Source: Bispira polyomma (Eukaryota). From it: a DNA stretch of 64,000 bases. Location: NCBI GenBank assembly GCA_965649765.1, contig OZ287760.1, forward strand, positions 17,360,001 through 17,424,000. Reading direction: 5' to 3'. Below are positions 26,853-26,934 of the stretch, piece by piece; position 1 is the first letter of the stretch; every line of letters begins with the position of its first letter. The notes under the pieces are model-generated. The model was not told the origin of the DNA and searched no databases. It saw only the letters and a list, made by a program, of their open reading frames with translations. Made by a program: the position numbers and the translations under genes.

Positions 26853-26934
26853 TGACCCTCGACCCACCCTGTAGAACCGAGCTTGTGTCTTTATCGTACC
26901 CACAAGCCTATTCTACAGTGTCAGTTCTGGGTCA
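26853..26934 (+). ncRNA. mir-10: miR-10-family pre-miRNA hairpin (non-canonical paralogue)
   Basis: 5p arm ACCCUGUAGAACCGAGCUUGUG (26866-26887) pairs with CACAAGCCUAUUCUACAGUGU (26901-26921). There is a 13-nt loop, a ~13-nt basal stem (UGACCC/GGGUCA), an apical UGUG and a CNNC (CUUC 26941-26944) ~18 nt downstream. It shares ACCCUGUAGA-CCGA--UUGUG with miR-10. Confidence 0.92.

Follow-up and report, generated by a model that had tools for sequence, protein, structure and literature searches.

Which miR-10 gene lies upstream of Lox5 in this genome, and did it arise together with its Hox neighbour? Extra miR-10 copies in the Hox clusters of Capitella and amphioxus were noted by a 2012 review (PMC3394115), and the annelid copies were given map positions and names in the paper on the Platynereis genome, according to which pleistoannelids have five paralogues of Mir-10-P1, with P7 and P8 retaining the P1 seed (PMC12257675). 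In the window analysed here (a stretch of 64,000 nucleotides, C13:17,360,001-17,424,000), a first-pass annotation had proposed an additional miR-10 gene in the interval between Lox5 and Antp, and had suspected that such a paralogue might already be named. We find that it is: the hairpin is, to near certainty, the orthologue of annelid Mir-10-P7, duplicated from a miR-10 locus within an already complete Hox cluster. The gene is already known and lies upstream of Lox5, as it usually does; the local twist is that Antp is apparently missing.

The hairpin is a miR-10 precursor with the canonical seed

The annotated sequence is present at window positions 26853-26934 and folds into one hairpin of -32.6 kcal/mol (z = -5.98), with none of 200 shuffles equally stable. 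Together with an Rfam mir-10 match at 26858-26930 on the plus strand (25.4 bits, E 0.001), this bears out the claim that a complete pre-miRNA hairpin is present, and the miR-10 type seed on its 5p arm places it in the MIR-10 family. Its score is under the RF00104 gathering score of 47.5, and a scan of the whole window with Rfam at gathering score returned no matches; the canonical miR-10 (36.1 bits) and P4 (miR-993; 39.5 bits) of the same genome also fall below this value, so that the cut-off does not separate the paralogues here. Three DNA runs from a single study contained 95-99% of the words sampled from this region, a figure that is not independent support.

When measured in the same register, the Capitella precursor comes to 62 nt, which is its annotated length, and the precursor of the window was therefore placed at 26865-26924 (Table 1). 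The first-pass annotation had begun the 5p product one base too late, leaving out C26865. With that base restored, the hairpin and canonical miR-10 (P1) have the same seed, and a seed shift in the hairpin, which we had considered, was rejected. Downstream of the stem, the CNNC motif of the three orthologues lies 18-19 nt past the predicted 3' Drosha cut; a basal UG was not found when the hairpin was inspected in the precursor register.

Sequence and cluster position identify Mir-10-P7

Positions 26865-26886 are identical to Pdu-Mir-10-P7_5p at 22/22, and the Capitella P7 mature sequence differs from the 5p arm of the window at position 1 alone. The Platynereis microRNA is dated to Annelida and has 1,871 mature against 2 star reads (bioRxiv 10.1101/2024.06.21.600153, supplement). 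Its name in the MirGeneDB scheme thus existed, as had been suspected; the mature sequence gave no full-text literature match, and the identity came from the supplement. The host is an annelid by its microRNAs, with an exact Mir-1995 and a Mir-1987 with one mismatch (controls 1 and 0), both of them annelid markers (PMC12257675). A custom model, by which 150 candidates were scored, found only one P7-type locus in the genome.

Table 1. Features of the window (upper rows, window positions) and of the Hox cluster (lower rows, C13 positions). Hox names other than Lox4 are our presumptive assignments, from known homeodomain signatures and gene order.
Feature	Position	Strand	Remarks
Pri-miRNA hairpin of Mir-10-P7 with basal stem	26853..26934	+	fold z, Rfam mir-10, basal-stem covariation
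Pre-miRNA, 60 nt	26865..26924	+	ends predicted from the Capitella (62 nt) and Platynereis precursors; 2-nt 3' overhang
Mature 5p arm	26865..26886	+	seed ACCCUGU (positions 2-8); end may reach 26887
3p (star) arm	26903..26924	+	seed AAGCCUA
CNNC processing motif	26941..26944	+	17 nt past the predicted 3' Drosha cut
Assembly gap (200 N)	46573..46772		hides the beginning of Lox5 exon 1
Lox5 coding exon 1, visible 3' end	46773..46868	+	YPWM hexapeptide at 46837
Lox5 homeodomain exon	59311..59673	+	KLTGP parapeptide
Post2	17.019 Mb	+	
Lox2	17.053 Mb	+	
Mir-10-P5 orthologue	17294818 (17.295 Mb)	+	16 kb 5' of the Lox4 homeobox
Lox4	17311088 (17.311 Mb)	+	97% identity with the Capitella gene that occupies the lox4 position
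Mir-10-P7 hairpin	17.387 Mb	+	
Lox5	17.419 Mb	+	
Scr	17.490 Mb	+	
Canonical miR-10 (P1)	17550673 (17.551 Mb)	+	between Scr and Dfd
P8-like miR-10 copy	17575147-17575166 (17.575 Mb)	-	between canonical miR-10 and Dfd
Dfd	17.587 Mb	+	
miR-993 (P4)	17.687 Mb	-	
Hox3, Hox2, Hox1	beyond miR-993, in that order	+	

Genome-wide searches covered the 1.035-Gb genome, and all Hox genes of the cluster lie on the plus strand. Within this cluster the hairpin stands on the Hox strand, 5' of Lox5, flanked by P5 and P1, which is the position of Mir-10-P7; the order and strands of the copies, P5(+), P7(+), P1(+), P8-like(-) and P4(-), are those of Platynereis scaffold_27, and on Capitella scaffold_70 P5, P7, P1 and P4 are arranged likewise. 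The hairpin is distinct from canonical P1, to which it is identical at 18/22: a separate canonical copy, which the first-pass annotation had advised looking for elsewhere in the cluster, was found between Hox4 and Hox5 at C13:17550673, and the hairpin is therefore not the species' only miR-10. The proposal of an additional miR-10 gene 5' of Lox5 holds on this evidence.

Several side observations concern the other copies. The Capitella P5 is likewise 5' of lox4. The antisense P8-like copy has the place, strand and seed of the Platynereis P4-2 (a preprint name, probably P8 in the published paper) and an unusually long loop of ~35 nt. Two patterns, one of them unreliable, and the custom model with its 150 scored candidates turned up no Mir-10-P6 in the cluster; as this model also missed the P8-like copy, its negative result does not equal absence. 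Off the Hox chromosome, C5:2028114-2028196 is a strong Rfam mir-10 match and probably miR-100 (Mir-10-P2).

The same hairpin was recovered in other assemblies. Its start in Capitella, record position 317,941, coincides with the coordinate given for Cte-Mir-10-P7; the Antp stop lies 2.3 kb before it, and lox5, by published distances, ~15 kb on its 3' side. In Paralvinella the hairpin follows the Antp stop at a distance of 4.3 kb. A metagenome scan yielded two more copies, one of them identical to that of Paralvinella. Across the four distinct copies (this species, Capitella, Paralvinella and L053), 5p positions 2-23 are identical and position 1 varies between C and G, which fits a seed of ACCCUGU. 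The loop and flanks vary, and four basal-stem pairs are changed on both sides, a comparison of four sequences, two of them maybe close relatives, that we read as supportive and that involved no statistical test. On the 3p side, 19 nt (26903-26921) are invariant in these four copies and diverged in Platynereis, a pattern that hints at a sedentarian host.

The sequence before the gap is collinear with Lox5

Lox5 is the sole homeobox gene in the window, and its named relatives are Lox5 proteins. The hairpin is on its strand and, as annotated, nominally 20 kb upstream (YPWM at 46837), with a 200-N gap between the two. This gap opens the way to an artefactual reading, in which the left contig belongs between Hox4 and Hox5 and the hairpin is the canonical miR-10 itself. 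Collinearity was assessed on contig ERZ22147071 (ENA) of a related species, whose Lox5 coding exon is 87% identical and whose introns are mostly unalignable. The contig was walked for 38 kb upstream of that exon, N-free, and P7 would be expected ~1.5 kb further on; the only further anchor reads through stop codons, and so the walk stopped there. Blocks matching window positions 30282, 37228, 40185, 41316, 42262 and 44152 follow one another in the same order up to Lox5 exon 1, and no homeobox lies between them and that exon in the walked stretch. Since the blocks are collinear with Lox5, the left contig is part of the Lox5 region and the position of the hairpin is no assembly error, a point on which the first-pass annotation had made its own reading depend. 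With the canonical gene present separately between Scr and Dfd as well, the artefact is improbable in the extreme. Judged from the contig, the gap probably spans a few kb at most.

The collinear non-coding blocks shared with the related species (window 30282-30632, 37228-37261, 40047-40345, 41316-41528, 42262-42447 and 44152-44260, and further on 48098-48380, 50892-50989, 55024-55128, 57510-57682 and 58066-58145) are candidate regulatory elements of Lox5 or P7. Just left of the gap, 45944-46392 is a MITE-like element of ~450 bp with perfect 38-bp terminal inverted repeats. An interspersed repeat of ~160 bp occurs at 20612-20796, 50441-50605, 60644-60796 and 62759-62921, and is present in the related contig too.

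Antp is apparently missing beside the microRNA

The location claimed for the gene, the Lox5-Antp interval, is not supported in this assembly. In Capitella and Paralvinella the hairpin is indeed immediately 3' of Antp; here it lies between Lox4, the next Hox gene 5' of it in the assembly, and Lox5, and no Antp homeobox was found in three six-frame whole-genome searches, one of them with Capitella Antp, which recovered nine cluster homeoboxes. Nor was an Antp remnant found in the 26.8 kb of gap-free window DNA upstream of the hairpin, in which positions 26699-26736 were masked. The homeobox at C13:17311088 was considered as Antp and rejected, being Lox4. P0079 was dropped as an Antp-like query because it is vertebrate HoxA6-like (89% to a human isoform), and Capitella Antp was used instead.

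The region between Lox4 and the hairpin extends over C13:17,311,300-17,386,800; as its 49 kb between Lox4 and the window may contain gaps, the loss of Antp from this genome is probable, not proven. That the lineage truly lost Antp yet kept Mir-10-P7 is a possible reading, which we hold tentatively. Loss of Antp has been published for Siboglinidae (PMC8476170, PMC10192322); a true loss here would, if the host is no siboglinid, be a further independent one among annelids. It would also mean that P7 is transcribed on its own and does not ride on Antp. With P7 retained and Antp seemingly lost, the locus lends itself naturally to testing the dependence of Hox-embedded microRNAs on the neighbouring Hox transcript.

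The microRNA is younger than its Hox neighbours

The first-pass annotation had further suggested that units of a Hox gene and a miR-10 were duplicated together, adding a post-transcriptional layer to the spiralian cluster. Under such tandem duplication each central Hox gene would have its own miR-10, and the copies do alternate with Hox genes (P5 5' of Lox4, P7 5' of Lox5, P1 5' of Dfd, P4 5' of Hox3). Against this, the origin assigned to P7 is Annelida, and the entries for Lottia, Crassostrea, Nautilus and Lingula do not include it, whereas the Hox genes are older and Lox5 is also found in molluscs. The searches gave no miR-10 copy on the 5' side of Scr, two of the copies (P4 and the P8-like one) run antisense, and P7 shares more positions with P5 (20/22) than with P1 (18/22). 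The published account, moreover, is of duplication of the miRNA locus alone (PMC12257675). Since P7 is confined to annelids and arose after Lox5 and Antp, co-duplication is unsupported, and we consider it very unlikely; for the same reason any extra layer would be annelid and not spiralian. Duplication of the microRNA within a complete cluster remains our reading.

Predicted processing and targets

Expression, arm choice and cut sites of P7 are taken over here from Platynereis and Capitella; for the Platynereis orthologue, separate stacks of 5p and 3p reads with 2-nt overhangs have been shown. Following the standard animal pathway, P7 would be transcribed in the Hox direction and cropped by Drosha at a stem marked by its basal part, an apical UGUG and the CNNC at +17; a Dicer cut would follow, and the 5p arm would pass onto Argonaute. 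Because it has the P1 seed, P7 would repress messages with ACAGGGU sites, largely those of canonical miR-10. The two mature sequences differ at positions 1, 12, 17 and 18 only. The Platynereis paper remarks on changes at positions 13-16 (PMC12257675); these positions are the same in P7 as in P1, so that the remark is not strictly applicable to P7. Going by position, the simplest role, and a likely one, would be to raise the dose of miR-10 in a domain further posterior, at the level of Lox5/Antp.

Seed sites for miR-10 were absent from the 4.3 kb past the Lox5 stop and from ~0.9-1.4 kb past the stops of six other Hox genes. Hox1 has one 8-mer 1,270 nt past its stop, beyond an AATAAA at +220, where 0.36 would be expected by chance over the eight genes; Hox genes are thus not shown as P7 targets. 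This site, whose occurrence is close to chance expectation, also pairs to some extent with the 3' part of P7 (-17.1 kcal/mol).

The invariant 19 nt of the 3p arm, set against a loop and flanks that diverge freely, raise the further possibility that P7 of sedentarians is two-armed, with the 3p (seed AAGCCUA) as another mature product that has targets of its own. The family has a known case of arm switching in P4 (PMC12257675). In Platynereis, however, the star arm differs in sequence and has 2 reads against 1,871, and two of the four compared copies may be closely related. In conserved microRNAs, moreover, pairing alone often keeps the star arm conserved. We regard a second product as unlikely; if real, it would add to the reading of Antp loss.

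Discussion

As annotation, the locus adds one further species for a described annelid gene, and the family of Hox-embedded annelid miR-10 copies is still a fair experimental subject. The closest known system is Mir-10-P7 of Platynereis and Capitella, with which the hairpin shares its 5p arm (throughout in Platynereis, from position 2 in Capitella), precursor register, Hox strand and place between P5 and P1, 5' of Lox5; it differs in a species-specific loop and flanks, and in having Lox4, with no Antp found, as its 5' Hox neighbour. Mir-10-P1 has the same seed and positions 13-16 and is likewise Hox-embedded on the same strand, but four of its 22 positions differ, it lies between Scr and Dfd, and it is bilaterian-wide. 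Mir-10-P5, also Hox-embedded on this strand, is identical at 20/22 in register, but it starts one base further 5', which shifts its seed, lies 5' of the Lox4 homeobox and is lophotrochozoan-wide. The extra miR-10 genes of amphioxus (Hox5/6 and Hox9/10; PMC3394115) resemble P7 as additional copies at more posterior cluster positions, and are probably independent duplications in another lineage.
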